A program made the translations under genes and the position numbers. Below are positions 24,293-53,654 of a stretch of DNA of 64,000 nucleotides, in pieces. The notes below the pieces were generated by a model. It ran no database searches and was not told the DNA's origin. It was given only the letters and a program-made list of their open reading frames with translations. Origin of the DNA: Monocercomonoides exilis PA203 (taxonomy: Eukaryota > Protista > Preaxostyla); the NCBI GenBank assembly GCA_001643675.2, contig LSRY02000043.1:682001-746000 (forward strand), in the 5' to 3' direction. How positions within the stretch are numbered: the stretch's first letter is position 1; every line of letters begins with the position of its first letter.

Positions 24293-25281
24293 AATAGGAT
24301 CGAATGAAAAAAAAGGATCTTTTAAAAATATGACCGTATTTTTAAATATCACAAAACCTAAATGAACCATTACATTAAATTGAAGTCTTATGCATTGAAT
24401 TATACATCAAAACAGATTTTGATACAAATATAAAATCCTAATCACCTGGACACAATTTTTGTGTTCTCCTTTAAAAATTATCAAAAGGCTTTCATTTCTT
24501 ATGTTGTGCAAACATATTCATTCTCGTTGAATATTCATTTTTGGTTCAATTATCAAAAAGAAAAGCCTTTTTTACATTCATTGTTAACCTTCTTTTATTT
24601 TGAAAATGGGAAAAACAAGGATGTTTGTATTTGTTGATTATATTCCTTGTTAAAAATTTCCCCATTTCTCCGTGAACAGGATATACTATGAACAAAATAT
24701 GTCCAGTTCATCTAGATGAGGAGGAGGAAGAAGAAGACAATGAGACTTTGTTGAGTGTGAAGAAGAAGATGGGGAAGAAGATTACAATGAAAAATGCTTC
24801 ACATGCTTTCAGAGAATGCGTTATTTTTTCAACAAGGAATATATCGAACATTATAAATTTATATAAGATGATTCTATTTTGAATGTTTGATGAAAATTAT
24901 AAAAATTCCCCCAGAATAATGTTCGTTTATCGTTACAAAATTCAACAATCACTTGAAATATTAGATTGTCAAAATCTTTATTTCTTTTTCATATTAAAAA
25001 ATTAATTTATTTCACTAAAATGAAAGAAAACAACCACATTAAATAAACAAATGGATTTTATTTGCATTTCCATTAAAATGATAATCATACAAATGTAAGA
25101 TCAATCATAAGTCAGTTTAAAAAAAATGATTAATTGCACTGAATTAGAAAAAAAGATAATTCACATTCTTAATGAGCTATGGAACAGAAAATGAATTTGT
25201 CATAATACATAAAGATTCAAAAAGAATGGGTTATCAAATACCCAATATTGGAAAAAACTTTTATTTCTGTTTTAAGTTTCC

Positions 25282-28200
25282 ATGCTCGACAAGTGCTTGC
25301 TGATATCTGCATTCATTTCCATATCCTTTCAATTAGCCGCCAACACAAGAATTGAATATCTTTCAAAAAGTGCCAGCAAGAGGGTTGTTTCCTTTGGCCT
25401 TGACGAGATGGATAATGGACCGATTTCAGTAGAAAGAAGTGCTCCGTCCATTGCAGTTGATGAAGATGCAAATTTGAAACACGAAAACGAAATTGCGGAA
25501 AAGAACTTCACAAAGCCGGTGTCTTCGACCATCGACACATTTATTGAAATGCACAACAGCACTTTTTGTGCCTCAAAACTCACCTTCTTTCCCACAGGAA
25601 GACAGTGTCAGATAGTGACATCTTGTTCGTCTCTTTTTCTGAAGCAGGTTTCTGTGTCATTTGGGGCAAAGGCGATTTCCAGATTTTGTGAAGCAGAAGG
25701 CGGACGGATTGAGATCTGCAATTTGAGTTTGCTGTTCCGAACACAAAACCGTTCGATTTCATCGCTTGTTGAGTGGAAAGAAAGTGCAGAGGGCGAAATT
25801 GGCTGTGGCAAAGCCTTTTTGTCAGACACTTCGTTTTCGTGCTTGTCGACTCCACCCTTCTTGTCTGTGTTTGGTTCGCTGTCTCTTTTGCACACGTCGA
25901 TGGAAAACGTGGTGTTTATGAATGCGTCAACAAACATTGCACACAGCAGCACCACTGCTTTCTCAGAAGCAAACCATCTCCAGAAATCTCTTGTCTCCAG
26001 CATCTTGCTGGTTGACTGTGACCAATCACTGTTGAGTGTTGATGAGAGTGCAACGAGGCTCGCAAAGTTAGTCGTGTTCAACTCTTCGTTTCTCAGATCG
26101 CATGACATTCAAAAGGATCAATGCTTCAACGCTTCACTGCCTTCGTTTTCGAGTGGACAAATAGAGTTCGACAGTTGCAGATTTGAATCATGCACATCAG
26201 CGACACGGAATGGAGGCGCACTAAATGTTGGTGGGAGTGCTTCTCTGACACTCAGAAGTTGCACTTTCACAAATTGCTCAATAACTTATTGTGGTACAAC
26301 TTATCCAAGAGGTGGTGCTGTTCATTATTCTGGAAATGGAAAATGCTTAACTGTCGATTCATTATTCGATTGTTGTTTTTGTGAATGTTCTTCAAAGTCT
26401 CCAATTGGTGGTGCATTATCAATTTTTAATAAAGATCCAATTATTATTCATTGCTCTTTTAATAAATGTCATTCACTTTCTGGAGGTGCATTAAATGTCG
26501 AATTAAATAACAATGTTGATGTGATAAACTGTTCCTTTAAGAAATGTGAAGCTCAGGACTGTCGAGGATCTATTCATATTATTTTTACAAAAACAAATAA
26601 CATATTGGATAATTGTTTTTTTCTTCAATCAAAAGCTCTTTCAACATTCGCTGGAACAGTGAATATTGACGGAGATGCAAACAGCACAAATCATATTATA
26701 TATTGTTTATTTGAAAACAACACATCTTTTGATAATAGAGGTCATGATATAACATTCGGAGGAAACAATTCAGTAAATGCAACAAAAGAATGGATAATAT
26801 ATTCATATTCGACATCAAGTCAGATTGGGCGAGTGTATTGCAACGGAGACAAAGCAGGGTGGCTCCCAGATGTGCCTGCAGTGTACGATCCTCTGAGAGT
26901 CGACTCAGATAGGGGAAGTGATGATGCAGGATGTGGGGAGAATGGAGCAGAGTGCAGGACAATCGCGTTTGCGGTGACACAGTGGGTGAGCCACAGACAC
27001 ACAGGGGTTGTGGTGTGCAGCGAGGTGAGTGTGGAGAAGGCTGTGAGCATCTCCGGGCTGGAGATTTGCATAAGCAAAGATGCAGCAATGGAACATGGAA
27101 CGATTCGGTCGGATGTGGAAAGCGGCTCGCTGTTCAGTGTGGGGAGCGGGAAGCTGGAGTTGGAGGGGTGGACAGTGATTCATGATACAGGAAATTCGAG
27201 GGGTTCGTCTCTGTTTGCAGTGGATGGGTATGAGGGTTTGGCGCATGTAAAGAATTGCACGATACAAGCGGACTCTGTGGATTTGTCGTTTCACGAGCCG
27301 CTTTTTGTGGCAGGGAGGGGAGAGATTGCTATCGAGGACTGCCAAGTGGAGAATGTGTGTCTGGAAGGGTGCAGTCTGCTGATGTGGAGTGCTGGAGGAA
27401 GTGTTTGTGTTCGAGGCGGGAATATAACTCAGATAACGAGAAGAAATGGAAACGGGGCAGTGGCAGAGAAGGCGTTGGAGGCAGGAGAGATGTTTGAGTT
27501 TGGGAATGTGACGATGAACGGGTGCAGGTGCAGTGCGGGGGATGGCGGAGCGATTTGGGTGGAGATGGTTGGAGGAAGCTGTGCGAGAATAGGATCAGAA
27601 AGTTCAGTCACAGGGATGAAGCAATGCTGGGCAGAACGGAGTGGGGAAGGAGGTTTTGCTGGAGAGAGCAGAGGTGGAGGGATATGTTTGGTGCTGAAGG
27701 ATGGAGGCGAAGACTTCTGTGTGGCTCGCCCGTTGTTTGAGGAGAACAATGCGGATTGGGGGCGAAATGTGTTTGTCAAATCTCCGGACCTCAAGAAAAG
27801 CACTGTTCAAGCACATTTTCCGTTCTATCCAGAGTATTTCTCGGAGCAAGAGATGCAGGGAGAAGATGGAAGAACACCGAATATTGGAATCCCGCTGGTG
27901 TATTTCCTGCAGCTGCGAGAAGTGCGAGTGAGTGTGGGAGACGGGGGAGTGGATGTGAGTGCATGTGGATTTGCAAAGTATCAGTGCAAGACGATGGACT
28001 ATGCATTTGGGCAGCAGGAAGGGATGCATCTGGTGCTGTACAACAAGAGCTACACATGGAGAGAGTGCCTGGTGCTTGATGGAGCAGAGGGATATGACTT
28101 GAGCGGGAAAGAAGGGATGTCGGAGGTGAGGATGGTTGGGAACGAGAGTGGGCTGTACGAGATGGTGAAGGTGGGGAGCAGTGTGCAGATATCACTTGTG

Positions 28201-31200
28201 GCATTTGCCTTGGAGCCTGGACTGAAACAGTCGCAGACTTGTGTGTTTGAAGTCGAAGGGGAAGGGAATGGTGCGCTGACGCTCTCTTCATCGCGGGTGA
28301 GCGGCGATGCGGATGTGCTGTCTGTCCCGTTCTGTTTTGTGTGCGTGAGAAAGGGGAAGATGCTGATGAGCAGTGTTGTTGTGGAGCATTTGTGCTTTTT
28401 GGTAGAGCCGTTTGTGAGGTGCAGCGGAACGGAGTCTGAAGCGGTGATGATGCAGGCAACGTTCGCTGACACGACAAGCGGGGGAGAAGAAGGGTTGATT
28501 GTGCTTCGCGATGGCTCCACGGCAAAAATCAGCAAGAGTGCGTTTGAAAGCAGCAGCGGAAGCAAGCAGCCGATGATTGTTGTGAACAAAGCCAGGAAGA
28601 CCAATGTGAGCGAGACAAGCGTAGACTGCTCTCTTTCTGGTCAAGGAGATGGGTGTTTCCTTCGCGGAACGCTGGGAGTGGGGTGCGAAATGGCTGTAGA
28701 TGGAGGAAACATGAGTGGGACATGCCCAAGAGGAAACGGGGGAATGCTGAGACTGGTGCTGGAAGGTGGAAGCAAGCTGCAGATTGGAAGAAGCATGGAG
28801 ACGATTGTGAGCAAGTGCAAAGCAGTTTTTGCAGCAGGGAGTGGGGGTGTGGAGGAGGGATGTACTTGGAGACAAATAGCAGTGACGTGGAATTGGGGCT
28901 GAATGCAGTGAAGTTTGATGGATGTCAAGCAGACAGGCATGGACACAATCTGTTTTTAACAGCCCCCAACTTCACAGCTTCTGTGACAAAAGCCACACTC
29001 GGATTTGTGGCTGACACCACAAATGAAGAGGAGCTTGAGGGATATGAAGGAGGAAACAGCACATATGCAATCCCGTTGGTGCTGTATCTGCGGGACGACC
29101 CTGAGCCAGTTATGGTTGGTGGAGATAACAAAAAAGATTTCGACAGATGTGGATATGCTGGACACGGGTGCGAAACGATGGACTTTGTGATGGCTCGGTG
29201 GGTGGAGGAAAACGGACTCAACGCATCAATATCAAACACTGTGCCGCTATACTCGGAGGCAAGTCTTGTCAGCGGAGTATTTGTGCTGAACGGCACATCA
29301 GTATATTCTCAAATAGACGTGTACGAAAATGCTGCAAAGAAACAGGATGGGATGATAGAGACAAGCTGTGCGACAACATTTACGGGACTGAAGATTACTG
29401 GGCCAGCGAGCTTGAACACGAGGTTTTATCTAATATGCACGAAAAGTGGAGTCTTGACATTGAGCTCGTGCGCTCTGAGTGTACGCTCGTCACTCACAGC
29501 TGCATATTCCATGATCGCCTGCACAGGAGGGCAGACAACGTTGAATGATGTGACCATCAGGAATGCTGTGTGTGCGTGTGGAGCCATGATTTGGATCACA
29601 GGAGAAGGAAGCTGCACCATGGATGAATGCACAATGATGAATGCAAAGGGTTCGGAAGCAACAGATGGATGCGTTGTCTATGCATCATCTGGCACTCTGG
29701 AAATAGGAAACACGACATTTTCAGAGGAAGGGGCAGATGACAGATCAGGCAGCGCGAGGCTGGCAGATAAGCTGGGAAAGTGGATGGGAGTGAGGAACTG
29801 CACGTTCAGAGGCTTGTCAAGGAACGGAGAAAAAGGATGTGTGCTGTTTGGGATGTTGGATGAAGGGATGGTGCTTGAGCTGAACGATGTGAACATGGAG
29901 AACTGCACTGTGAGTGGAGGAAGCGGAGGAGGATGCTTTGTGGAGTTGTCGAAGACAGCAAGACTTCGTGTCGGAGAGAGTGGGAATAGAATGCTGGCTG
30001 AAGGATGCCGAGCGCTGGCTGGCGAAGATGGCGGATTGAAGGGATTTGGAGGAGGAATGCTGGTGAAGTGCATTGAAGAGGCAAGTGATATGATAATTGC
30101 GGGGGTGAAATTTGGAGAAGGGGAAAAAGCGAACATGGCTGACAAGGGAGGAAACAATGTGTTTGTTTCGTGTGTGAATTTATCAATGGTGGTGAATGAA
30201 GGCTCGTTCAACTTTGACTTTTTGAAGAAAGTTGAAGAGTCGCCCAGGCTGTGGGATTTGATGGGGATGGAAAATGGAGCAAGAGAGAATCCGATTCCGC
30301 TTGTTGTGTTCTTTCGAGAAAGCGCAGGGAATGTGTTTGTTGGAGACAAAGGGTGCGATTATGTATTATGCGGATTTGAGGATTATCCGTGCAGAGGAAT
30401 TGTGCATGCTGCAGCACTGCGAAAAGGATCGGAAAACGTGGTGGTTACGCTTCTTGCAGACTTTGGGTTTTGCGATTCCATAATTCTGGATGCTCAAGAA
30501 ATGACCATCAACACCCAAGGCAACAGCCACGAAAGAATGGTCCATGGAGAAGGAGAAGGAGAATCCAACTGGTTGATAGAGACCAAAAAGAACATCACTT
30601 TTGAAGATGTCTCATTTGGGATGCCGCCTTCATTTAACTGCCAACGTGAAAGCTTTCTGAAGTGCAGAAAAGACAAACTGGAGCTCAGAAGGTGTTTGGC
30701 GAAGGTTGATGCAGACTCAAGGAGGATTGATTATTCATTTGTTAGTGTGGAAGGAGGGATGCTTGTGATGGATGATTTTTCAGCGATGGAGTTGTGTGCT
30801 GTGCAACATGGGCTTGTGGATGGAAGAGGGCTGGACTCAAAAGTGGAGCTAAGTGGGGTGAAGTTTGAGGGTGTTTCTGTGGAAGGAGAAAGAGGAGTTG
30901 TGTGTGGGCAAAGCTGTGGATTGCTCAGCATGAATGATTCTTGGATGAATTCGTCTGCTCTTGGAGACAGCTGCTTGGTGTGGTTTTGCGGGTGCGAATC
31001 CGTTAACATGAAAGGGCTGAGCATCTGGAATGTGTCGAGAACAGCAGGGAGTGGAGGGGCATTCAGTGGAGAAATAGGAGAAGGGTGCAAGTGCGAGATC
31101 CGTGGGAGCACATTTGGCAATGTGAGTTGTGGGGAGCATGCTGGAAGGGGAGGGTGCGGAGCTGTGGAGGTGATGAGAAATGGGAAGCTGATTATTGAGG

Positions 31201-34200
31201 GGTGCGTTTTCGAAAAAAACGGAGTGGACGAAGAAGCAGGGTTTGGGGGAGGGTTGTTTGCTCGGTTTGTGGATGTGAGTGTAAAGTACAGCATGAAGCA
31301 CAACACATTTGCAGAGAACAAAGCAAGCGTGGGGAAAGATGTGTATGTGATTTGCCCGCAGGCGAGAAAGATGCTGTATCAGGAGTTGTGGGAAGGAACA
31401 GTCGAAGAGGATGATGAAAAAGAGCGGTTTTGGGTTTATGATGAGAGTTCTGGAGTGGTAATCAACACTTCGATATTAGTTATGCTTTTTCCGGCAGGCG
31501 AGGAGATTGTATTTGTTGATGGAACAGTGATAAATTCAGAGGGGTGTGGTCACGAAGAAACACCATGTGGCGATGTGTTGCATGGGTTCAAAGCAATGAA
31601 CGAAAATCAGACCACAATAAGGATTGTGTCGGGTACATTTTTGGGATCAGTTATTGATCGAGACTCATCGCTCGCAATTGAAGGGGCAAAGGCGATTCAC
31701 CCAGAGCTGGAGATAAAGCAAAGCGGGCAGCTATGTGTGTCTCATGATAACATATCTCTTACGCTTCGAGGCTTGACTTTCAGATTTGCAACAGAACTTT
31801 CGCCAGCATTAACTTCTTCACAATTATCTTCGGCATCTTCTTCTGCGTTGAGTTCTGTCTTTGCCATCAGTTGCGGACGATGCGCAGTGACGGATTGTGC
31901 ATTTGGAAGAGGAGGCGAAGGAGAAGGAGATGAAGACCAATCAGAGGTGACAAGATGGCTGGTATATGAAACCGGAGGTGCAGTTGAGATGAGTTCTGTT
32001 CGGTTTGAAAGTGTTGATTTTTGCAATGAATGCGGGATTGGGCTTTGCCTTGGCGGAGAAATGGTTTGCCAAAACGTCACAATTTCCCACATTGCAACAG
32101 ATGGCCCGAATATATTTGAAAGCAGAGGCAATGCTCTGGTGGAATTCAGCATGATGAACGTGAGCCATGCAAGAGCAGAGAAAGGGCGATTTGTCACTGT
32201 GAAGGAAGGGTCGAGCTTGATGATGGGCGAGGAGTGTGCGCTTGAGGGTTGTGGGCGAAGTTCAGTGAATGGGAGTTTTGCTTGCTGCGAAATGAGCAAG
32301 GAAGCAGAGCTGAAGATAGAATCTGGGGCAATGAGTCATTGGGCATGCGACAATGAGAAAGGTTATGGAGGATGCCTGTTCGTCAAGCTGTGTGCCGGGT
32401 TTGGTGGAGATTTTTACTTCAAAAATATTCAGTTGAGTGAGAATGATGCCTTTGGGGGGAAGGACATGTTTGTGGAATGTGTAGAACTAAATGCATCGGT
32501 GACACAAGAAAGGTTCAGGTTTGAGCTGGCAAGTGGGAGCGACGGGAAGGCTGCTGATCTGAAGGGTATTGATGCAATGCGCTTTCCCTCTCCAGTGGAT
32601 TTGAGGCTATTTCTTATTCAGGCGCACTGCATGCAGGCTGTTGTGTCCAGCGAAGGGTATGACACTTTGGGCTGCGGGGTGCTGATGCATCCCTGCCAGT
32701 CATTTTGGAGAGGCTATTGCAACACGCAGGCAGACGCAGATCCAAAGGAGCTGGCAATACAGGAGGGTGCAACAGTCAGTCGCGGATACGATATGTCTTC
32801 ATTTGTTGTTGCTTCGTTGCCAGCAGAAGAATACAGCAAACTGCACATTTCACATGATATCCAGGATGGGATATCTGGTGCAGTGTTTTGGAATGCCAAG
32901 GCGCTGTTGTTCCGCACAATCATATTCTCATTTCCCCCAACAGCATCATCTGCCGTTCGTTCGATGATTGCTTCGTCGTCTGCAAGCTCTTTGCTGTCGA
33001 TTATCAACTGCTCCATATCCAAAGCGAGTGACGCTGCAGTTCAATATGTGGCTGTATCAGTCACAGGGGGCGAGCTTGTTATTGAAAGCAGTTCGTACAC
33101 ATCGTCTGGCGAGTATGCTTCTGCTCCCTTTTCTGTTCGTGGCACAATGTGTGCGATAAACAGCTCATTCAGCACGGCTCAAACGAGATCAAGCAAGGAA
33201 GGAGGGCTGATGCAAATCAAAACGAGTGGCGGTGATTCGGTAAAGATGGAGGGATGCACACTGGAAGGGTGTGCATGCACTGAAGAGAATGGGAAAGGGG
33301 GCGCTTTGTATGTTGATGGGAAAGAAGCCGTTCAGTCTAATTGTTTGCTGCTGAAAAGTGTCGATTTTGCAGCGAATCATGCACAAATCGGGGAGCACAT
33401 GTTTGTTGCGTGCAAAGACCTGAATGCTACAGTGACAAAGTCGAGCTTCATGTTTTCGTTGGATTTTGTCAAGGAAGATGACAATGGGCTGATGGGAAGC
33501 GATGCAGTGCATAATGAAACAACGCTTCTGAGGTTTCTTGTGCAGTACAAAGGAAGCACAGTGCACATTGCTCGAGCCGGGTACGACTTGTTGCGATGTG
33601 GAGGAGCAGAGGATCCGTGCAGGAGCTGGACTCACGGGGTGAAGCAATTTGAGTCAGAGTCCCCCACAAAAATAGTTGTGATCGATGGAGGCTGCAACTA
33701 CAAGGAGAATGGGGTGCTTTCGGATTATGAAGTGAAGTCGATTGGGGAGGAAGAAGAGGAGCAATCAAGAGCTGAGCTTTGCGTCGTGCAGGGCGATGAC
33801 GAACAACATGACGTGTGCATGCGAAATGCAAGGGTGCTTTGTTTTGAAAAGATCTCGTTTGTTGTGGCAGAGGGGTTTTCAAACGAGGAAAACGGGGTGA
33901 TTGTCAGCGAAGATGGGAACTTGAGGTTGACGAGCTGCGAGGCTTGGATGAACGGCAGAGCTTTGCTGGAAAACAGCGCTTCATTTGTCGTTGTGCTGAG
34001 AGGGGCTGTGCTGCTGGAAGGAATGACAGTGAGCCGCTCATCGTTTGGAAGAAGTTTGATGGAAATAGCGTCTCATGTGGATTGTGTGTTGGATTCTGTC
34101 AGTGCAGAATTGATAAATGTTGAAGAAGGATGCATAATTAGCATGAGAGATGACGACTCTGAGCAAATGAACAGCAAAAACGCTGGAGCAGGGATTTCAT

Positions 34201-37200
34201 TAAACAAGTGCTCATTCAAGAATATCACAAACAACGGAGAGAGCGGAAGCGTTGTGGTTGTTGGAGGAAGAGGCAGTGGAAGCAAACTTTGCATTAATTC
34301 GAGTATGCTTGAAATGTGCACAAGCAGCAATTCGCAGAAAGGAGGGGCAATTCTGTTTCGATTGAGCTCTGGCGGATGCTTGGACGTGAGAGGCTCAACG
34401 ATTGGGCTGTGCAGCTGTTCGGCACAGAATGGGTGTGGAGGCGGCTTCTATGTTGAGGCTGTGCATGCAGGAAGCCTGAACATGCTTTTTGCTAATATCA
34501 AGTTCGACTCGAACATTGCGCATATCGGGAGGGATTTGTTTGTGGAGTGCAACAACATCAGAGAGCAGATCAACGAGACGCAGTTCCAGTTTGATCTGAG
34601 AGAATCGAAGTACAACAGTCTGAATGCAATATTTGGAATAGACAGAGCAGAGTTGTGTGTGGAGGCAGTGAATCTGATTGAGTTTATTGTGATATATCAG
34701 AATGACACGATCTTCACGAGCTCGGATGATGGATCAGCAAGTGAAGACAGCAAAAACTGTGGAACTCAGGCGCTTCCATGCTTGTCGGTCGGGTATGCAG
34801 TCGACCATCTCACATATGACTTTGAAAGCCAGATTGTGGTTGTCGGGGAAGGGTTGATTGGAAAGGAAGTGGACGTGGCAAATGTATCGATACGATCGCG
34901 GGGATCAGAGACTGCACTTCTGCGCATTGGTTTGCAACTGGAATGCACACGCCAGTATGTGGTGCTGTGTTCGGAGGCAGTTTTCTTCAGGGGGATTTCG
35001 TTTGTTGTTTGTGCAGAGAGCATGCATGGTCATGGATGCTTTGTAGAGTGCAGCCGAGGCACAACACAAATGACAAGGTGCTCGTTTCGAAATGATGCAG
35101 AGATGGGCAATTCCACCAAGATAAATGCCATTTTGGTGCAAGTGGAGGCAAGGGGATGTCTGCAACTGGAAAACACAACACTGAGGCAGATATCGTCAGA
35201 ATGTCCGCTGATAGCATGTGAAGGACAATCAACGCTGCGCTGCACTTCTCTGATCATGGAATCGCTTTTCTGTGCATGTGATGCGATTCTTGTAAAAGAA
35301 TGCGAATTATTGGGCATGGAAAAAGTCGAGTGCCATGATGTTGTGTGCAGCAGTGGAGCGCTGTTTGCCTTTCAGGGAATAAATGCTGGTGAGAGGAGTG
35401 GAAACAGTGAAGAATACTCTCTTTCAATGGGCTCATTTAAAAACATATCAGTCGAGGCAAGAAAGCAAACACTTTTCTGTTTTACGCGCTTAACAAATCT
35501 GCGAATGCGAAACATCACTTTTAGCAGATGCTCGGCACTTGTGCAGAATGGCATGTTGCTATCTTCTGATAGATGCCATGAAACAGAAATTGAATACTGC
35601 CGCTTTAGCGAGAAAGGAATGGACGACATCGTGGAGTCAAAGACGCCAAGAAGCGAGATATGCAAATGGAATGGATCACTAGTTGCCCTGCAACAGTCTG
35701 AGACAATAATAAGAGGCACCACCATATCAGAATCGCCAATCGGGGGATTATTTGTGTCTGGAGGGAATGTGATGATAGATCAAGGGGAGTTTCGGGACAA
35801 CAATGCAAAGGTGAAAGGATATCCATCTGCACGAAAAAATATAGCATGCGCTGATCGTGGCATGCTGTCAATCGCAAGCCTGAAAGGAGGAGACGGCATG
35901 TTGCCAAGCACATCCATGTGGATTGCAAATAGCAATTGTGTGCTTGGTGGAATTGCTTCAGAGCGAGCATCATCATTTTTTATCCCTGTGCTAGAGTCGG
36001 TGAAGATGGAAAAAGGAGAAATTACAACAGAGCTCACATTCATCGGAAAGCTTCTTCTTCCGTGCAATCTGACGGTTCAGATAGCTTTTTCAATTGGAAG
36101 TGAGTCTCAAATAGAAAAGCAAAATATGAATGAGAGCAACTACAAATCTGAAACTGAGATTCACAGCTGGATATCTTCCACAAAAATAAATGGAGTATCG
36201 GAAGAGGTTGAAGTGTCAGTGTGCATTCTGTTTGGAGACGAGAGCATTCGGCGACCAACTGATTCTTTCATCCTGAAGAACAGAAGCGAGCCCAAATCAA
36301 ATGGAGATGAAAGAATTGTTGAAGGAGGAAACAAAGAAAAATCGATATGGCCAATTGTGGTTGTAATTTTGGCTATTATATTATTGTTTGTAATAATTGT
36401 TTCTGTGGTATTTGCAGTGAGATGGAGAAAGCAGAAGAGAAGGACAAAGAGCTGGAGGTGATTGTGGAAGACACAGTGAAGAAGGATCCGAAAGCGTTTG
36501 AGATGGTGACGATGGAGATGTCACCCGAGGAGCAGTGGAGGAGAGCTGAGAGGGAGGCAGAGAAGAAGAATGAAGAGAGGATAAAGAAGAGAGTGTATGA
36601 GAAAAGCTTGGGACATTCAGAGTCATCAGAGCATTTGTTGAGTGAGAGTGGCTCAACAGAATACATCTTGGGGAGAGATTCAGACAAGATCCCTCAATGG
36701 ATGCTTGAGAAGGTTGATGAGGAAGAGACGAGGAAAAGAACACCATCGCCATCCATTTCATCCACCTCAACAACAGACACTTCAGACACAGAATCCACTT
36801 TTGTTCGAGGAGAGGATCTGTGTCCAACCACCTCATCCATGTCGAATCTGGTGGATGCAATGGCCTGTTCATCGCCGCATGAGAAGCTCATTGTGGACTT
36901 GAGGGATTCGCTGTTCATGCTGCTTCATGGAAGGAATGAGAAGAAAGAGATGGCGATAGGCACTCTGCAAGAGAGGGAGGTCTCTGCTGCTCAGATCCTG
37001 TTCTGGGTGGCCAATCTTGCTCTCCACTCATTTGACGAAATGAACAATCCTCTTTCATCTCTTGCCAACCTCAGCCCTCACATCGTGCTGTTTTCTGAGC
37101 ACATGGTGATCTGCATTGCCCTCCACTCCGACTGCTCCTCAGGCTCAGACACTTCATCCACTTTTTCTTCCACCTCGACAATTGTCACCTCTTCCTCAGA

Positions 37201-37681
37201 TTGCTCAGCCATCAACAAGAAAGGCCAAGGCTCACCACCACCACCTTCATCAGCATTTGAGGATGAGGATGACAACCGGAAAGAGTGTCTGCGGTGGAAG
37301 GCGCCAGAGCTGCTGATGAACAAAGATCTGGGAGCCACAAAGAAGACAGTTGTGTTCTCGATTGGGATGATGCTGTGGGAGAGTCTGACGCTGGAGATCC
37401 CGTTTGGCGAGTATGAAGCAGAGGTGGCGGGGATGTGGCTGAAAGAAGGAAAGCGGCCGAAGACGGGAGGGCTGGAAGGGAGCAGGCTGGAAGGGCTGGT
37501 GAAAGGGTGCTTTTCGCAAGAGGCGAGGGACAGATGCACTCTGACAGATGTGAAGCGGGTGCTAATTGGGTTGTTCCCGGCCGGGACAGTCATGCTCACA
37601 GTGACCGATGCGATTGGGCTGGAGGAAGGATCAGGAAGCTACAGGAAATACAGCAGGTTCAGTGGGGAAGGAAGCAACTGA
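25282..37681 (+). CDS. giant type-I membrane protein (~4133 aa): Cys/Gly-rich beta-helix-like ectodomain, TM helix, TK/TKL-like pseudokinase; left copy, two 1-nt frameshifts (~28845, ~36446)
   Basis: Signal-peptide-like start, repeated GGA(I/L) and FxxN motifs, eight CGx5C modules, TM IWPIVVVILAIILLFVIIVSVVFAV, then LRWKAPE and VFSIGMMLWE..EIPF. Both frameshift sites are intact in the other arm. Confidence 0.88.
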
Positions 37682-40909: not shown

Positions 40910-43900
40910 TCAGTTGCTTCCTTCCCCACTGAACCTGCTGTATTTCCTGTAGCTTCCTGATCCTTCCTCCAGCCCAATCGCATCGGTCACTGTGAGCATG
41001 ACTGTCCCGGCCGGGAACAACCCAATTAGCACCCGCTTCACATCTGTCAGAGTGCATCTGTCCCTCGCCTCTTGCGAAAAGCACCCTTTCACCAGCCCTT
41101 CCAGCCTGCTCCCTTCCAGCCCTCCCGTCTTCGGCCGCTTTCCTTCTTTCAGCCACATCCCCGCCACCTCTGCTTCATACTCGCCAAACGGGATCTCCAG
41201 CGTCAGACTCTCCCACAGCATCATCCCAATCGAGAACACAACTGTCTTCTTTGTGGCTCCCAGATCTTTGTTCATCAGCAGCTCTGGCGCCTTCCACCGC
41301 AGACACTCTTTCCGGTTGTCATCCTCATCCTCAAATGCTGATGAAGGTGGTGGTGGTGAGCCTTGGCCTTTCTTGTTGATGGCTGAGCAATCTGAGGAAG
41401 AGGTGACAATTGTCGAGGTGGAAGAAAAAGTGGATGAAGTGTCTGAGCCTGAGGAGCAGTCGGAGTGGAGGGCAATGCAGATCACCATGTGCTCAGAAAA
41501 CAGCACGATGTGAGGGCTGAGGTTGGCAAGAGATGAAAGAGGATTGTTCATTTCGTCAAATGAGTGGAGAGCAAGATTGGCCACCCAGAACAGGATCTGA
41601 GCAGCAGAGACCTCCCTCTCTTGCAGAGTGCCTATCGCCATCTCTTTCTTCTCATTCCTTCCATGAAGCAGCATGAACAGCGAATCCCTCAAGTCCACAA
41701 TGAGCTTCTCATGCGGCGATGAACAGGCCATTGCATCCACCAGATTCGACATGGATGAGGTGGTTGGACACAGATCCTCTCCTCGAACAAAAGTGGATTC
41801 TGTGTCTGAAGTGTCTGTTGTTGAGGTGGATGAAATGGATGGCGATGGTGTTCTTTTCCTCGTCTCTTCCTCATCAACCTTCTCAAGCATCCATTGAGGG
41901 ATCTTGTCTGAATCTCTCCCCAAGATGTATTCTGTTGAGCCACTCTCACTCAACAAATGCTCTGATGACTCTGAATGTCCCAAGCTTTTCTCATACACTC
42001 TCTTCTTTATCCTCTCTTCATTCTTCTTCTCTGCCTCCCTCTCAGCTCTCCTCCACTGCTCCTCGGGTGACATCTCCATCGTCACCATCTCAAACGCTTT
42101 CGGATCCTTCTTCACTGTGTCTTCCACAATCACCTCCAGCTCTTTTGTCCTTCTCTTCTGCTTTCTCCATCTCACTGCAAATACCACAGAAACAATTATT
42201 ACAAACAATAATATAATAGCCAAAATTACAACCACAATTGGCCATATCGATTTTTCTTTGTTTCCTCCTTCAACAATTCTTTCATCTCCATTTGATTTGG
42301 GCTCGCTTCTGTTCTTCAGGATGAAAGAATCAGTTGGTCGCCGAATGCTCTCGTCTCCAAACAGAATGCACACTGACACTTCAACCTCTTCCGATACTCC
42401 ATTTATTTTTGTGGAAGATATCCAGCTGTGAATCTCAGTTTCAGATTTGTAGTTGCTCTCATTCATATTTTGCTTTTCTATTTGAGACTCACTTCCAATT
42501 GAAAAAGCTATCTGAACCGTCAGATTGCACGGAAGAAGAAGCTTTCCGATGAATGTGAGCTCTGTTGTAATTTCTCCTTTTTCCATCTTCACCGACTCTA
42601 GCACAGGGATAAAAAATGATGATGCTCGCTCTGAAGCAATTCCACCAAGCACACAATTGCTATTTGCAATCCACATGGATGTGCTTGGCAACATGCCGTC
42701 TCCTCCTTTCAGGCTTGCGATTGACAGCATGCCACGATCAGCGCATGCTATATTTTTTCGTGCAGATGGATATCCTTTCACCTTTGCATTGTTGTCCCGA
42801 AACTCCCCTTGATCTATCATCACATTCCCTCCAGACACAAATAATCCCCCGATTGGCGATTCTGATATGGTGGTGCCTCTTATTATTGTCTCAGACTGTT
42901 GCAGGGCAACTAGTGATCCATTCCATTTGCATATCTCGCTTCTTGGCGTCTTTGACTCCACGATGTCGTCCATTCCTTTCTCGCTAAAGCGGCAGTATTC
43001 AATTTCTGTTTCATGGCATCTATCAGAAGATAGCAACATGCCATTCTGCACAAGTGCCGAGCATCTGCTAAAAGTGATGTTTCGCATTCGCAGATTTGTT
43101 AAGCGCGTAAAACAGAAAAGTGTTTGCTTTCTTGCCTCGACTGATATGTTTTTAAATGAGCCCATTGAAAGAGAGTATTCTTCACTGTTTCCACTCCTCT
43201 CACCAGCATTTATTCCCTGAAAGGCAAACAGCGCTCCACTGCTGCACACAACATCATGGCACTCGACTTTTTCCATGCCCAATAATTCGCATTCTTTTAC
43301 AAGAATCGCATCACATGCACAGAAAAGCGATTCCATGATCAGAGAAGTGCAGCGCAGCGTTGATTGTCCTTCACATGCTATCAGCGGACATTCTGACGAT
43401 ATCTGCCTCAGTGTTGTGTTTTCCAGTTGCAGACATCCCCTTGCCTCCACTTGCACCAAAATGGCATTTATCTTGGTGGAATTGCCCATCTCTGCATCAT
43501 TTCGAAACGAGCACCTTGTCATTTGTGTTGTGCCTCGGCTGCACTCTACAAAGCATCCATGACCATGCATGCTCTCTGCACAAACAACAAACGAAATCCC
43601 CCTGAAGAAAACTGCCTCCGAACACAGCACCACATACTGGCGTGTGCATTCCAGTTGCAAACCAATGCGCAGAAGTGCAGTCTCTGATCCCCGCGATCGT
43701 ATCGATACATTTGCCACGTCCACTTCCTTTCCAATCAACCCTTCCCCGACAACCACAATCTGGCTTTCAAAGTCATATGTGAGATGGTCGACTGCATACC
43801 CGACCGACAAGCATGGAAGCGCCTGAGTTCCACAGTTTTTGCTGTCTTCACTTGCTGATCCATCATCCGAGCTCGTGAAGATCGTGTCATTCTGATATAT

Positions 43901-46900
43901 CACAATAAACTCAATCAGATTCACTGCCTCCACACACAACTCTGCTCTGTCTATTCCAAATATTGCATTCAGACTGTTGTACTTCGATTCTCTCAGATCA
44001 AACTGGAACTGCGTCTCGTTGATCTGCTCTCTGATGTTGTTGCACTCCACAAACAAATCCCTCCCGATATGCGCAATGTTCGAGTCGAACTTGATATTAG
44101 CAAAAAGCATGTTCAGGCTTCCTGCATGCACAGCCTCAACATAGAAGCCGCCTCCACACCCATTCTGTGCCGAACAGCTGCACAGCCCAATCGTTGAGCC
44201 TCTCACGTCCAAGCATCCGCCAGAGCTCAATCGAAACAGAATTGCCCCTCCTTTCTGCGAATTGCTGCTTGTGCACATTTCAAGCATACTCGAATTAATG
44301 CAAAGTTTGCTTCCACTGCCTCTTCCTCCAACAACCACAACGCTTCCGCTCTCTCCGTTGTTTGTGATATTCTTGAATGAGCACTTGTTTAATGAAATCC
44401 CTGCTCCAGCGTTTTTGCTGTTCATTTGCTCAGAGTCGTCATCTCTCATGCTAATTATGCATCCTTCTTCAACATTTATCAATTCTGCACTGACAGAATC
44501 CAACACACAATCCACATGAGACGCTATTTCCATCAAACTTCTTCCAAACGATGAGCGGCTCACTGTCATTCCTTCCAGCAGCACAGCCCCTCTCAGCACA
44601 ACGACAAATGAAGCGCTGTTTTCCAGCAAAGCTCTGCCGTTCATCCAAGCCTCGCAGCTCGTCAACCTCAAGTTCCCATCTTCGCTGACAATCACCCCGT
44701 TTTCCTCGTTTGAAAACCCCTCTGCCACAACAAACGAGATCTTTTCAAAACAAAGCACCCTTGCATTTCGCATGCACACGTCATGTTGTTCGTCATCGCC
44801 CTGCACGACGCAAAGCTCAGCTCTTGATTGCTCCTCTTCTTCCTCCCCAATCGACTTCACTTCATAATCCGAAAGCACCCCATTCTCCTTGTAGTTGCAG
44901 CCTCCATCGATCACAACTATTTTTGTGGGGGACTCTGACTCAAATTGCTTCACCCCGTGAGTCCAGCTCCTGCACGGATCCTCTGCTCCTCCACATCGCA
45001 ACAAGTCGTACCCGGCTCGAGCAATGTGCACTGTGCTTCCTTTGTACTGCACAAGAAACCTCAGAAGCGTTGTTTCATTATGCACTGCATCGCTTCCCAT
45101 CAGCCCATTGTCATCTTCCTTGACAAAATCCAACGAAAACATGAAGCTCGACTTTGTCACTGTAGCATTCAGGTCTTTGCACGCAACAAACATGTGCTCC
45201 CCGATTTGTGCATGATTCGCTGCAAAATCGACACTTTTCAGCAGCAAACAATTAGACTGAACGGCTTCTTTCCCATCAACATACAAAGCGCCCCTTTCCC
45301 ATTCTCTTCAGTGCATGCACACCCTTCCAGTGTGCATCCCTCCATCTTTACCGAATCACCGCCACTCGTTTTGATTTGCATCAGCCCTCCTTCCTTGCTT
45401 GATCTCGTTTGAGCCGTGCTGAATGAGCTGTTTATCGCACACATTGTGCCACGAACAGAAAAGGGAGCAGAAGCATACTCGCCAGACGATGTGTACGAAC
45501 TGCTTTCAATAACAAGCTCGCCCCCTGTGACTGATACAGCCACATATTGAACTGCAGCGTCACTCGCTTTGGATATGGAGCAGTTGATAATCGACAGCAA
45601 AGAGCTTGCAGACGACGAAGCAATCATCGAACGAACGGCAGATGATGCTGTTGGGGGAAATGAGAATATGATTGTGCGGAACAACAGCGCCTTGGCATTC
45701 CAAAACACTGCACCAGATATCCCATCCTGGATATCATGTGAAATGTGCAGTTTGCTGTATTCTTCTGCTGGCAACGAAGCAACAACAAATGAAGACATAT
45801 CGTATCCGCGACTGACTGTTGCACCCTCCTGTATTGCCAGCTCCTTTGGATCTGCGTCTGCCTGCGTGTTGCAATAGCCTCTCCAAAATGACTGGCAGGG
45901 ATGCATCAGCACCCCGCAGCCCAAAGTGTCATACCCTTCGCTGGACACAACAGCCTGCATGCAGTGCGCCTGAATAAGAAATAGCCTCAAATCCACTGGA
46001 GAGGGAAAGCGCATTGCATCAATACCCTTCAGATCAGCAGCCTTCCCGTCGCTCCCACTTGCCAGCTCAAACCTGAACCTTTCTTGTGTCACCGATGCAT
46101 TTAGTTCTACACATTCCACAAACATGTCCTTCCCCCCAAAGGCATCATTCTCACTCAACTGAATATTTTTGAAGTAAAAATCTCCACCAAACCCGGCACA
46201 CAGCTTGACGAACAGGCATCCTCCATAACCTTTCTCATTGTCGCATGCCCAATGACTCATTGCCCCAGATTCTATCTTCAGCTCTGCTTCCTTGCTCATT
46301 TCGCAGCAAGCAAAACTCCCATTCACTGAACTTCGCCCACAACCCTCAAGCGCACACTCCTCGCCCATCATCAAGCTCGACCCTTCCTTCACAGTGACAA
46401 ATCGCCCTTTCTCTGCTCTTGCATGGCTCACGTTCATCATGCTGAATTCCACCAGAGCATTGCCTCTGCTTTCAAATATATTCGGGCCATCTGTTGCAAT
46501 GTGGGAAATTGTGACGTTTTGGCAAACCATTTCTCCGCCAAGGCAAAGCCCAATCCCGCATTCATTGCAAAAATCAACACTTTCAAACCGAACAGAACTC
46601 ATCTCAACTGCACCTCCGGTTTCATATACCAGCCATCTTGTCACCTCTGATTGGTCTTCATCTCCTTCTCCTTCGCCTCCTCTTCCAAATGCACAATCCG
46701 TCACTGCGCATCGTCCGCAACTGATGGCAAAGACAGAACTCAACGCAGAAGAAGATGCCGAAGATAATTGTGAAGAAGTTAATGCTGGCGAAAGTTCTGT
46801 TGCAAATCTGAAAGTCAAGCCTCGAAGCGTAAGAGATATGTTATCATGAGACACACATAGCTGCCCGCTTTGCTTTATCTCCAGCTCTGGGTGAATCGCC

Positions 46901-49900
46901 TTTGCCCCTTCAATTGCGAGCGATGAGTCTCGATCAATAACTGATCCCAAAAATGTACCCGACACAATCCTTATTGTGGTCTGATTTTCGTTCATTGCTT
47001 TGAACCCATGCAACACATCGCCACATGGTGTTTCTTCGTGACCACACCCCTCTGAATTTATCACTGTTCCATCAACAAATACAATCTCCTCGCCTGCAGG
47101 AAAAAGCATAACTAATATCGAAGTGTTGATTACCACTCCAGAACTCTCATCATAAACCCAAAACCGCTCTTTTTCATCATCCTCTTCGACTGTTCCTTCC
47201 CACAACTCCTGATACAGCATCTTTCTCGCCTGCGGGCAAATCACATACACATCTTTCCCCACGCTTGCTTTGTTCTCTGCAAATGTGTTGTGCTTCATGC
47301 TGTACTTTGCACTCACATCCACAAACTGAACAAATAACCCTCCCCCAAACCCTGCTTCTTCGTCCACTCCGTTTTTTTCGAAAACGCACCCCTCAATAAT
47401 CAGCTTCCCATTTCTCATCACCTCCACAGCTCCGCACCCTCCCCTTCCAGCATGCTCCCCACAACTCACATTGCCAAATGTGCTCCCACGGATCTCGCAC
47501 TTGCACCCTTCTCCTATTTCTCCACTGAATGCCCCTCCACTCCCTGCTGTTCTCGACACATTCCAGATGCTCAGCCCTTTCATGTTAACGGATTCGCACC
47601 CGCAAAACCACACCAAGCAGCTGTCTCCAAGAGCAGACGAATTCATCCAAGAATCATTCATGCTGAGCAATCCACAGCTTTGCCCACACACAACTCCTCT
47701 TTCTCCTTCCACAGAAACACCCTCAAACTTCACCCCACTTAGCTCCACTTTTGAGTCCAGCCCTCTTCCATCCACAAGCCCATGTTGCACAGCACACAAC
47801 TCCATCGCTGAAAAATCATCCATCACAAGCATCCCTCCTTCCACACTAACAAATGAATAATCAATCCTCCTTGAGTCTGCATCAACCTTCGCCAAACACC
47901 TTCTGAGCTCCAGTTTGTCTTTTCTGCACTTCAGAAAGCTTTCACGTTGGCAGTTAAATGAAGGCGGCATCCCAAATGAGACATCTTCAAAAGTGATGTT
48001 CTTTTTGGTCTCTATCAACCAGTTGGATTCTCCTTCTCCTTCTCCATGGACCATTCTTTCGTGGCTGTTGCCTTGGGTGTTGATGGTCATTTCTTGAGCA
48101 TCCAGAATTATGGAATCGCAAAACCCAAAGTCTGCAAGAAGCGTAACCACCACGTTTTCCGATCCTTTTCGCAGTGCTGCAGCATGCACAATTCCTCTGC
48201 ACGGATAATCCTCAAATCCGCATAATACATAATCGCACCCTTTGTCTCCAACAAACACATTCCCTGCGCTTTCTCGAAAGAACACAACAAGCGGAATCGG
48301 ATTCTCTCTTGCTCCATTTTCCATCCCCATCAAATCCCACAGCCTGGGCGACTCTTCAACTTTCTTCAAAAGTCAAAGTTGAACGAGCCTTCATTCACCA
48401 CCATTGATAAATTCACACACGAAACAAACACATTGTTTCCTCCCTTGTCAGCCATGTTCGCTTTTTCCCCTTCTCCAAATTTCACCCCCGCAATTATCAT
48501 ATCACTTGCCTCTTCAATGCACTTCACCAGCATTCCTCCTCCAAATCCCTTCAATCCGCCATCTTCGCCAGCCAGCGCTCGGCATCCTTCAGCCAGCATT
48601 CTATTCCCACTCTCTCCGACACGAAGTCTTGCTGTCTTCGACAACTCCACAAAGCATCCTCCTCCGCTTCCTCCACTCACAGTGCAGTTCTCCATGTTCA
48701 CATCGTTCAGCTCAAGCACCATCCCTTCATCCAACATCCCAAACAGCACACATCCTTTTTCTCCGTTCCTTGACAAGCCTCTGAACGTGCAGTTCCTCAC
48801 TCCCATCCACTTTCCCAGCTTATCTGCCAGCCTCGCGCTGCCTGATCTGTCATCTGCCCCTTCCTCTGAAAATGTCGTGTTTCCTATTTCCAGAGTGCCA
48901 GATGATGCATAGACAACGCATCCATCTGTTGCTTCCGAACCCTTTGCATTCATCATTGTGCATTCATCCATGGTGCAGCTTCCTTCTCCTGTGATCCAAA
49001 TCATGGCTCCACACGCACACACAGCATTCCTGATGGTCACATCATTCAACGTTGTCTGCCCTCCTGTGCAGGCGATCATGGAATATGCAGCTGTGAGTGA
49101 CGAGCGTACACTCAGAGCGCACGAGCTCAATGTCAAGACTCCACTTTTCGTGCATATTAGATAAAACCTCGTGTTCAAGCTCGCTGGCCCAGTAATCTTC
49201 AGTCCCGTAAATGTTGTCGCACAGCTTGTCTCTATCATCCCATCCTGTTTCTTTGCAGCATTTTCGTACACGTCTATTTGAGAATATACTGATGTGCCGT
49301 TCAGCACAAATACTCCGCTGACAAGACTTGCCTCCGAGTATAGCGGCACAGTGTTTGATATTGATGCGTTGAGTCCGTTTTCCTCCACCCACCGAGCCAT
49401 CACAAAGTCCATCGTTTCGCACCCGTGTCCAGCATATCCACATCTGTCGAAATCTTTTTTGTTATCTCCACCAACCATAACTGGCTCAGGGTCGTCCCGC
49501 AGATACAGCACCAACGGGATTGCATATGTGCTGTTTCCTCCTTCATATCCCTCAAGCTCCTCTTCATTTGTGGTGTCAGCCACAAATCCGAGTGTGGCTT
49601 TTGTCACAGAAGCTGTGAAGTTGGGGGCTGTTAAAAACAGATTGTGTCCATGCCTGTCTGCTTGACATCCATCAAACTTCACTGCATTCAGCCCCAATTC
49701 CACGTCACTGCTATTTGTCTCCAAGTACATCCCTCCTCCACACCCCCCACTCCCTGCTGCAAAAACTGCTTTGCACTTGCTCACAATCGTCTCCATGCTT
49801 CTTCCAATCTGCAGCTTGCTTCCACCTTCCAGCACCAGTCTCAGCATTCCCCCGTTTCCTCTTGGGCATGTCCCACTCATGTTTCCTCCATCTACAGCCA

Positions 49901-52900
49901 TTTCGCACCCCACTCCCAGCGTTCCGCGAAGGAAACACCCATCTCCTTGACCAGAAAGAGAGCAGTCTACGCTTGTCTCGCTCACATTGGTCTTCCTGGC
50001 TTTGTTCACAACAATCATCGGCTGCTTGCTTCCGCTGCTGCTTTCAAACGCACTCTTGCTGATTTTTGCCGTGGAGCCATCGCGAAGCACAATCAACCCT
50101 TCTTCTCCCCCGCTTGTCGTGTCAGCGAACGTTGCCTGCATCATCACCGCTTCAGACTCCGTTCCGCTGCACCTCACAAACGGCTCTACCAAAAAGCACA
50201 AATGCTCCACAACAACACTGCTCATCAGCATCTTCCCCTTTCTCACGCACACAAAACAGAACGGGACAGACAGCACATCCGCATCGCCGCTCACCCGCGA
50301 TGAAGAGAGCGTCAGCGCACCATTCCCTTCCCCTTCGACTTCAAACACACAAGTCTGCGACTGTTTCAGTCCAGGCTCCAAGGCAAATGCCACAAGTGAT
50401 ATCTGCACACTGCTCCCCACCTTCACCATCTCGTACAGCCCACTCTCGTTCCCAACCATCCTCACCTCCGACATCCCTTCTTTCCCGCTCAAGTCATATC
50501 CCTCTGCTCCATCAAGCACCAGGCACTCTCTCCATGTGTAGCTCTTGTTGTACAGCACCAGATGCATCCCTTCCTGCTGCCCAAATGCATAGTCCATCGT
50601 CTTGCACTGATACTTTGCAAATCCACATGCACTCACATCCACTCCCCCGTCTCCCACACTCACTCGCACTTCTCGCAGCTGCAGGAAATACACCAGCGGG
50701 ATTCCAATATTCGGTGTTCTTCCATCTTCTCCCTGCATCTCTTGCTCCGAGAAATACTCTGGATAGAACGGAAAATGTGCTTGAACAGTGCTTTTCTTGA
50801 GGTCCGGAGATTTGACAAACACATTTCGCCCCCAATCCGCATTGTTCTCCTCAAACAACGGGCGAGCCACACAGAAGTCTTCGCCTCCATCCTTCAGCAC
50901 CAAACATATCCCTCCACCTCTGCTCTCTCCAGCAAAACCTCCTTCCCCACTCCGTTCTGCCCAGCATTGCTTCATCCCTGTGACTGAACTTTCTGATCCT
51001 ATTCTCGCACAGCTTCCTCCAACCATCTCCACCCAAATCGCTCCGCCATCCCCCGCACTGCACCTGCACCCGTTCATCGTCACATTCCCAAACTCAAACA
51101 TCTCTCCTGCCTCCAACGCCTTCTCTGCCACTGCCCCGTTTCCATTTCTTCTCGTTATCTGAGTTATATTCCCGCCTCGAACACAAACACTTCCTCCAGC
51201 ACTCCACATCAGCAGACTGCACCCTTCCAGACACACATTCTCCACTTGGCAGTCCTCGATAGCAATCTCTCCCCTCCCTGCCACAAAAAGCGGCTCGTGA
51301 AACGACAAATCCACAGAGTCCGCTTGTATCGTGCAATTCTTTACATGCGCCAAACCCTCATACCCATCCACTGCAAACAGAGACGAACCCCTCGAATTTC
51401 CTGTATCATGAATCACTGTCCACCCCTCCAACTCCAGCTTCCCGCTCCCCACACTGAACAGCGAGCCGCTTTCCACATCCGACCGAATCGTTCCATGTTC
51501 CATTGCTGCATCTTTGCTTATGCAAATCTCCAGCCCGGAGATGCTCACAGCCTTCTCCACACTCACCTCGCTGCACACCACAACCCCTGTGTGTCTGTGG
51601 CTCACCCACTGTGTCACCGCAAACGCGATTGTCCTGCACTCTGCTCCATTCTCCCCACATCCTGCATCATCACTTCCCCTATCTGAGTCGACTCTCAGAG
51701 GATCGTACACTGCAGGCACATCTGGGAGCCACCCTGCTTTGTCTCCGTTGCAATACACTCGCCCAATCTGACTTGATGTCGAATATGAATATATTATCCA
51801 TTCTTTTGTTGCATTTACTGAATTGTTTCCTCCGAATGTTATATCATGACCTCTATTATCAAAAGATGTGTTGTTTTCAAATAAACAATATATAATATGA
51901 TTTGTGCTGTTTGCATCTCCGTCAATATTCACTGTTCCAGCGAATGTTGAAAGAGCTTTTGATTGAAGAAAAAAACAATTATCCAATATGTTATTTGTTT
52001 TTGTAAAAATAATATGAATAGATCCTCGACAGTCCTGAGCTTCACATTTCTTAAAGGAACAGTTTATCACATCAACATTGTTATTTAATTCGACATTTAA
52101 TGCACCTCCAGAAAGTGAATGACATTTATTAAAAGAGCAATGAATAATAATTGGATCTTTATTAAAAATTGATAATGCACCACCAATTGGAGACTTTGAA
52201 GAACATTCACAAAAACAACAATCGAATAATGAATCGACAGTTAAGCATTTTCCATTTCCAGAATAATGAACAGCACCACCTCTTGGATAAGTTGTACCAC
52301 AATAAGTTATTGAGCAATTTGTGAAAGTGCAACTTCTGAGTGTCAGAGAAGCACTCCCACCAACATTTAGTGCGCCTCCATTCCGTGTCGCTGATGTGCA
52401 TGATTCAAATCTGCAACTGTCGAACTCTATTTGTCCACTCGAAAACGAAGGCAGTGAAGCGTTGAAGCATTGATCCTTTTGAATGTCATGCGATCTGAGA
52501 AACGAAGAGTTGAACACGACTAACTTTGCGAGCCTCGTTGCACTCTCATCAACACTCAACAGTGATTGGTCACAGTCAACCAGCAAGATGCTGGAGACAA
52601 GAGATTTCTGGAGATGGTTTGCTTCTGAGAAAGCAGTGGTGCTGCTGTGTGCAATGTTTGTTGACGCATTCATAAACACCACGTTTTCCATCGACGTGTG
52701 CAAAAGAGACAGCGAACCAAACACAGACAAGAAGGGTGGAGTCGACAAGCACGAAAACGAAGTGTCTGACAAAAAGGCTTTGCCACAGCCAATTTCGCCC
52801 TCTGCACTTTCTTTCCACTCAACAAGCGATGAAATCGAACGGTTTTGTGTTCGGAACAGCAAACTCAAATTGCAGATCTCAATCCGTCCGCCTTCTGCTT

Positions 52901-53309
52901 CACAAAATCTGGAAATCGCCTTTGCCCCAAATGACACAGAAACCTGCTTCAGAAAAAGAGACGAACAAGATGTCACTATCTGACACTGTCTTCCTGTGGG
53001 AAAGAAGGTGAGTTTTGAGGCACAAAAAGTGCTGTTGTGCATTTCAATAAATGTGTCGATGGTCGAAGACACCGGCTTTGTGAAGTTCTTTTCCGCAATT
53101 TCGTTTTCGTGTTTCAAATTTGCATCTTCATCAACTGCAATGGACGGAGCACTTCTTTCTACTGAAATCGGTCCATTATCCATCTCGTCAAGGCCAAAGG
53201 AAACAACCCTCTTGCTGGCACTTTTTGAAAGATATTCAATTCTTGTGTTGGCGGCTAATTGAAAGGATATGGAAATGAATGCAGATATCAGCAAGCACTT
53301 GTCGAGCAT
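40910..53309 (-). CDS. right copy of the giant receptor-pseudokinase; two different 1-nt frameshifts (~48368, ~45291)
   Basis: ORFs 48366-53309, 45238-48369 and 40910-45286 mirror the left copy. Confidence 0.88.
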
Positions 53310-53654
53310 GGAAACTTAAAACAGAAATTAGAGTTTTTTTCAAAATTGGGTTTTTGATAACCCATTCTTTTCCCTTATTTTTCTGATGAACTTTTTTGTT
53401 CTTAAAATTTAAATGTAAAAACATTCAAAAAACTCAATTGATTGATAGTAATTTTGCAAGAGCAGAAAATAGGTGTAACCAAAACACTTTATTCAAATCA
53501 CTCTTTCGTCACGATTTTCATTCAACATGATTTTTTTTTTAAAAAAATATCAAATTTGGAATATGAAGAGATCAACAGAATTGGAATTTTTTTTTTGTGC
53601 TTTTTTCTTTATTGGTACCAAAATTTTATGTAATGAAAAAACGTTAAAAACACA

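Follow-up and report, generated by a model that had tools for sequence, protein, structure and literature searches.

How does a palindrome with a giant gene in each arm arise, and what keeps its arms nearly identical? The question is raised by a 64,000-nucleotide stretch of the genome of the gut protist Monocercomonoides exilis PA203 (contig LSRY02000043.1, here C40, positions 682001-746000), which is the whole stretch analysed and is called the window; bare positions are counted from its first letter. Self-BLAST of the window, taken from an assembly of 82.3 Mb in 101 contigs, returns one large inverted match, 25220-53371, at 99.6% identity. This match, palindrome A, is confirmed as a real chromosomal structure. 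An initial annotation, made from the letters alone, had described two almost identical arms of ~14 kb with a 133-bp spacer, a giant surface receptor gene in each arm and a duplicated unit starting ~60 bp upstream of the ATG. All of this holds: the arms run inward to 39230 and 39364, each contains a receptor-like open reading frame (ORF) of ~4,130 codons with a predicted pseudokinase tail, and the duplicated stretch begins 62 bp ahead of the ATG. The locus probably has a history in three steps: a single fold-back at a miniature inverted-repeat transposable element (MITE), duplication of the finished palindrome, and conversion from arm to arm. The elements of the palindrome are as follows.

25220..39230, plus strand: left arm of palindrome A (AL), 14.0 kb, from self-BLAST and arm alignment.
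39364..53371, minus strand: right arm (AR), the inverted copy, from self-BLAST and arm alignment.
39231..39363, no strand: spacer of 133 bp, single-copy, the interior of the MITE, from arm alignment and read contigs.
39182..39412, no strand: hairpin MITE at the axis, 231 bp, fold z -9.3, with one terminal inverted repeat (TIR) shortened by a ~20-bp deletion.
47098..47335, minus strand: five substitutions private to AR, three of them amino-acid changing; AL has the state found in a twin palindrome, B.

The unit starts upstream of an ATG at 25282, and beyond its start the regions preceding the two gene copies are unrelated. The inner arms differ at 5 sites in 13,929 aligned bases. All seven indels between the arms are of a single base and lie in homopolymers, while the substitutions comprise five clustered at 31256-31493, five in the outermost 42 bp, and three in the TIR at the axis, within the innermost 35 bp of the arm. 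The five AR-private changes may be real or may be a polishing error; a genome search found no donor for them.

The cargo of each arm is one intronless ORF of 4,134 codons, provided that its breaks are errors.

25282..37681, plus strand: left copy of the giant receptor-like gene, intronless and ~4,133 amino acids long provided that its homopolymer breaks, at 28842 and 36445, count as errors.
40910..53309, minus strand: the same receptor-like gene, right copy, with homopolymer breaks at 48372 and 45295.
36336..36431, plus strand: transmembrane helix, from a hydropathy scan.
37265..37561, plus strand: kinase C-lobe only, TKL-like, matching PF07714 positions 160-257 and the C-lobes of TAK1, CTR1 and ILK.

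The four coding indels are single-base homopolymer losses, located differently in each arm. The break at 36445 is missing from all four read sets, restoring the frame; the frameshifts in both gene copies are taken to be homopolymer errors, with the read-set check covering 36445. The encoded protein, whose ORF was searched as separate pieces and not as a joined product, has a hydrophobic N-terminus, a Cys-rich ectodomain of ~3,700 residues, one transmembrane helix and a kinase-like tail. Motif inspection of the tail recognizes no G-loop, HRD or DFG, and a full kinase domain (G-loop, VAIK lysine, HRD, DFG) is absent; the tail is thus a predicted pseudokinase. The ectodomain probably consists of beta-helix repeats, to judge from weak matches: a homologue search with its N-terminal piece, comparing proteins of similar length only, gives one weak beta-helix/PMP match, and the Atlas matches, to beta-helix/PMP proteins and parabasalid look-alikes, have low recognition value and serve as leads only. 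A single-sequence structure prediction for the N-terminal ectodomain reaches a pLDDT of 39. The 3' end of the gene has 1,194 candidate places in the genome, and its 3' 1.2 kb is ~80% identical across many paralogs. The protein tyrosine kinase (PTK)/TKL family is the biggest family of genes in M. exilis and overlaps unclassified repeats (PMC6759080; PMC8767320); the window gene belongs to this family, with its TKL-like C-lobe, and is a member that lacks the catalytic motifs.

The axis itself is a transposon, which the initial annotation, in its entry on the palindrome, did not mention, as it did not mention a twin. Related copies of its MITE stand at 21714, 24051 and 55337 in the window, and the family is short (231-255 bp), non-coding, TIR-bounded and multicopy: the TIR core of the axis element has 717 matches in the genome and 0 in a reversed control, and at least ~360 copies of the MITE are present. 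The target duplication of the family is 4 bp and AT-rich, as empty sites of its members give AAAT and ATAT; a copy of the axis MITE in a paralogous locus, C, is flanked by AATT/AAAT, an imperfect target-site duplication with one mismatch. An AWWT-type 4-bp duplication is a hallmark of Sola1 MITEs (PMC3845634), and the axis family looks Sola1-like, having in common with these elements the AWWT-type duplication, G-starting termini, a similar TIR core and a size of 200-340 bp. It differs in the imperfect duplication of the axis copy and in that no autonomous partner is identified here, no search for a Sola1 transposase having been made. The hairpins at 21714 and 24051 were considered as the two ends of one transposon (21714-24292); they look like separate insertions, because the 24051 copy is missing at the matching site beside palindrome B and has its own 4-bp duplication.

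Two further loci, both found by a genome search with the axis region, show what may have preceded and what may have followed the birth of the palindrome. Locus C (C40:474183-488791) is a full-length, non-palindromic paralog that shares with the palindromes only its last 3.8 kb (C40:485011-488791: gene end, 3' flank and MITE), at 93-94% DNA identity, while its ectodomain is only ~22-27% identical at the protein level. Judged by this distribution of identity, locus C is a chimeric gene, presumably made by exchange of a 3' module. It carries the same MITE, with TIRs of ~65 bp, at the same site (C40:488.5 kb); homology to the palindromes stops exactly at the far TIR, and ordinary flank follows. 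Because the MITE is the same and is followed by ordinary flank, locus C is taken as the state before fold-back, in which the short inverted repeat of the fold was already in place. The flank beyond the MITE of locus C is missing at A and B, and no other close copy of it occurs in the assembly. Another fold-back element, ~410 bp, lies behind the MITE of locus C, at C40:488835-489243.

Locus B, which starts 146 kb from A, is likewise a palindrome; it spans 29.4 kb and has the same MITE at its axis. Contig C88 (4719-34086) contains it whole, and it also appears in two parts, one at the end of C40 and the other at the start of C28. Contig C88 overlaps the C40 end (853.5-869.2 kb) and the C28 start at 98-99%, and on these overlaps C40, C88 and C28 are read as one chromosome stretch broken at palindrome B, where the contigs join. 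The B spacer is reversed in C88 relative to C40/C28, an orientation made unreliable by reads shorter than the arms; the reversal may be a flip-flop or an assembly ambiguity. A and B are not alleles, as they occur on the same contig and have different flanks. The features by which the two palindromes are compared include both flanks of A.

26322..26694, plus strand: 372-bp in-frame ectodomain cassette that differs between A and B and is identical in both arms of each.
38525..38527, no strand: junction of a 618-bp deletion, in both A arms and not in B or paralog C.
25247, 25251 and 25262 (mirrors 53344, 53340 and 53329), plus strand: three frozen edge sites, at which AL equals the left arm of B (BL) and AR equals its right arm (BR).
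21714..25219, plus strand: left flank common to twin B, 21714-24920 with the left side of B and 24337-25219 with its right side.
53372..55319, minus strand: right flank of A, with 216 bp found nowhere else and then a 1.73-kb multicopy DDE_1 transposon (53588-55319).

Arm-to-arm conversion is recognized here as in mammalian X/Y palindromes, by a divergence within palindromes far below that between them (Swanepoel et al., 10.1101/800185), with the paralogous twin as the stand-in for the second palindrome. At 482 sites A and B differ while both arms of each agree (the AA versus BB pattern); the inner arms differ from each other at 5 sites in A and 1 in B (0.04% and 0.007%). Divergence between A and B is 1.2% in the background (27000-36000), 3.4% overall, far higher in patches, the 372-bp cassette among them, and ~2.6% at synonymous sites. 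With paralog C as the outgroup, the 3' 2.6 kb yields 36 changes derived in A and 58 derived in B, all of them present in both arms. The 372-bp cassette and the 618-bp deletion follow the same rule; a genome search found no close donor for the cassette. The background pN/pS between A and B is 0.31 (p=3e-9), which points to purifying selection on the gene. All comparisons are made within the genome of one strain.

Common ancestry of the two palindromes is argued from their outer ends. At the three frozen edge sites left resembles left and right resembles right, B's alleles are each read in two contigs, and the surrounding motif occurs genome-wide only in the four arms of A and B. Since the motif is missing from other paralogs, AR did not borrow its edge alleles from a neighbour; for the same reason the outer junction is ruled out as a promoter motif of the whole family. 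The left flank of A matches both sides of B, which implies that the ancestral arms reached further out; at their present outer ends B stops in a fringe of ~80-85% identity and A in sequence without homology. Beyond the arm boundary of B lies an island of 415 bp with 0 differences between the two sides of B and 8% difference from A, where about 5-10 differences would be expected had it been frozen since the A/B split. Between it and the inner arm stand the three frozen sites and a heterologous block of 290 bp. A single continuous copy from the axis cannot explain this island, because it would have erased both the block and the frozen sites; the island needs at least one conversion tract away from the axis.

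Taken together, these patterns are probably best explained by the following history. A break beyond the MITE, 1.5 kb behind the receptor gene, would have been followed by resection, after which the ~65-bp TIRs of the MITE would fold back and prime synthesis that returns across the gene. The arm made in this way would be rejoined to the chromosome some 15 kb further out, with loss of the flank beyond the MITE. The finished palindrome, together with its left flank, would then have been copied 146 kb away, giving A and B, as the left and right edge alleles common to both suggest. The third step, observed as a pattern, would be maintenance by intrachromosomal gene conversion, which copies the arms of each palindrome onto each other: point changes, the 618-bp deletion and the swapped 372-bp cassette would become fixed in both arms, and differences would be left solely in the ~40 bp next to the outer heterology and in the TIRs. 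The initial annotation had proposed the palindrome as a route for amplifying and homogenizing a surface-protein family. Homogenization is borne out between the two arms (482 fixed sites versus 5 and 1 within) and not across the family; amplification accounts for two and then four copies of one gene in a family with >1,000 candidate loci, which makes it one of several routes rather than the evident engine of the family.

Several points weigh against this history. Read depth, suggested by the initial annotation as a check, gives a divided answer: in run X2 the mean depth of contigs specific to the A arms is 129 and 135 versus 48 for the spacer contig (~2.7x), and in run X3 depth is 24-25 per assumed copy versus 32 for the spacer; these are per-contig means rather than copy numbers and lend weak support. 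None of the listed read contigs, which cover 36400-39440 and are contigs only, spans a TIR-to-arm or an outer junction. The genome was assembled with Canu, Nanopolish and Pilon from Oxford Nanopore reads with an N50 of 8.9 kb (PMC8767320); this is shorter than an arm, and consensus calling could hide a few true differences between the arms. The three adjacent edge sites, the basis of common ancestry, may be one mutational event. The AL edge allele at 25245-25254 is a perfect 10-bp palindrome, which the AR allele is not; a single template switch is suggested as the source of two among the three frozen differences. On the right, the flank of A is unrelated to that of B, and an additional rearrangement is needed to account for this; the island of B could instead come from a later exchange between A and B. 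The 482 sites and the outgroup pattern, taken alone, also fit two independent fold-backs.

How far do these points favour other explanations? An assembly artefact, made by fold-back nanopore reads at the hairpin or by misjoining of near-identical genes, would draw on the arms exceeding the read N50 and on B being spread over three contigs with discordant spacer orientation. It is very unlikely: two loci that have diverged share one axis, B comes in three separate contigs, the four outer junctions are all distinct and the spacer is asymmetric. That spacer is present in read contigs without mismatch (39246-39395 in X2 and 39246-39402 in X3), its 31-mers occur once among the compared loci, and a read contig (38469-38552) crosses the deletion junction of A without a gap. 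The arm-private substitutions, the greater depth of the arms in X2 and the single-copy flank behind the MITE of paralog C likewise speak against an artefact, as does the description of the DNA as sheared, with no amplification step (PMC8767320).

Two independent recent fold-backs are a more serious alternative, and still quite an improbable one. A unit of gene and MITE would have been duplicated, would have diverged by 1-3%, and each copy would later have folded at the same MITE, so that the arms are alike because they are young. Such a course accounts for all of the AA versus BB sites and indels without any conversion, and it fits the differing right outer ends; but a continuous copy of BL out to the 415-bp island should have equalized the edge alleles and the upstream block, which did not happen, and AR and BR have in common alleles found nowhere else. 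The prior for two fold-backs at one insertion is also low, as few of the ~360 MITE copies have seeded giant palindromes. Alternatively, the palindromes may share an origin and be homogenized mainly by breakage of a hairpin or cruciform at the axis and re-synthesis of a whole arm rather than by scattered conversion tracts. The strong hairpin into which the axis folds, the almost total identity of the inner arms and the co-fixation of large heterologies (618 bp, 372 bp) would suit such resetting, which nonetheless seems improbable, if anything a little more so, as the isolated island of B requires one or more tracts without an anchor at the axis, and in A the TIRs adjoining the axis have kept their differences. 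The preferred history remains a single fold-back, duplication of the finished palindrome and arm-to-arm conversion.

Is the palindrome also a source of double-stranded RNA (dsRNA)? The initial annotation suggested that read-through past the axis could silence the receptor family, and in principle convergent transcription through the axis would make the locus a hairpin-RNA gene. The geometry permits it, the 3' end of the gene is similar across many paralogs, and four Piwi-domain loci exceed the Pfam cut-off (C28:121800, C47:1301934, C47:1987965 and C8:157110); the words Argonaute and RNAi are not used in the 2019 M. exilis genome paper. In RNA run X5 an A-type contig reaches 38133, 450 bases past the stop codon and ~1.1 kb before the axis, and no contigs are found from 38133 to 39440, although contigs show presence and cannot prove absence. 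Coverage in run X1, whose library type is not on record, all but vanishes after 38275. The transcripts seem to terminate some 1 kb ahead of the axis, and the A-type transcript is present; the proposal goes unsupported, and a silencing role is hardly to be expected.

The surroundings of palindrome A are rich in mobile elements. A DIRS-like retroelement (6859-12900) has ORFs for reverse transcriptase, RNase H and tyrosine recombinase on the minus strand and 58-bp inverted ends at 7550-7607 and 12843-12900; the 362 bp at 13247-13608 form a nearly perfect palindrome (96%) that has hardly any spacer and is probably a further fold-back element. Four remnants of DDE_1 (pogo-type) transposases occupy 634-1810, 22199-23993, 53588-55319 and 56311-57335, the third having at least 40 copies. 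Ordinary neighbours comprise an FtsX-like permease (2571-5153), an RBR/IBR ubiquitin ligase (16721-18817), an Rpb4-like protein (19078-19584) and a nitroreductase (60303-60845). Elsewhere in the genome, pairs of equal-scoring inverted matches mark possible further palindromes at C10:1444000-1448426, C69:1820244-1888077 and C91:1139103-1143262.

Both processes proposed here have precedents, and these come from different systems: fold-back birth from experimental breaks and tumours, and arm-to-arm conversion from sex chromosomes. The rDNA of Tetrahymena is a fold-back inverted duplication seeded by a short inverted repeat. Inverted duplications of this kind are known in yeast (Al-Zain et al., 2023, PMC10622511) and in humans, where the cases include Alu or LINE pairs at the fold (Hermetz et al., 2014, PMC3907307). 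As in these systems (PMC10622511, PMC3907307), a short inverted repeat that was there beforehand encloses a spacer present once; loss of the distal flank and healing of the end at a second junction, through homology or a repeat, may be shared as well. Palindrome A differs in its seed, a single MITE with its two TIRs, and in its product, which is interstitial, is fixed in the line kept in culture, carries a gene and is of an age to have been duplicated again; the double-strand break and hairpin-capped intermediate of its birth, like any dicentric step, are putative. A whole-word term search found no literature on MITE-centred inverted duplications, and the words palindrome and inverted repeat are not used in the searched text of PMC8767320.

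The likeness to mammalian X/Y palindromes (10.1101/800185) extends to arms >10 kb long and >99% identical (14.0 kb in A), to the low divergence within palindromes relative to that between them, and to protein-coding cargo apparently under purifying selection. The differences are that the host is a unicellular protist, that the spacer has a length of only 133 bp and consists of a transposon, and that a paralogous twin takes the place of an orthologue from another species in the comparison. By analogy, palindrome A may work like the palindromes of sex chromosomes, without being classed as one.

What is new is the twin-based test of conversion. With a precursor-like state, a palindrome and its diverged twin on one contig, a protist that can be cultured allows birth, duplication and homogenization to be followed side by side. 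Fragility would be expected of a palindrome with 14-kb arms and a hairpin centre of 133 bp, yet such a structure can apparently persist while ~2.6% synonymous divergence accrues. The assembly gains as well: C40, C88 and C28 join through B, and homopolymer errors in the arms are seen to make intact genes resemble pseudogenes. To our knowledge, no sex chromosome is known in M. exilis. A bolder reading, which is unlikely on present evidence, is that MITE-centred palindromes are a recurring, duplicable and self-correcting unit of surface-receptor evolution in this organism: a MITE behind a receptor gene would seed a two-copy palindrome, cassettes imported into one arm would be fixed in both, and the spacer would flip between isomers in living populations. 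If true, this would amount to Y-palindrome-like dynamics without a sex chromosome.

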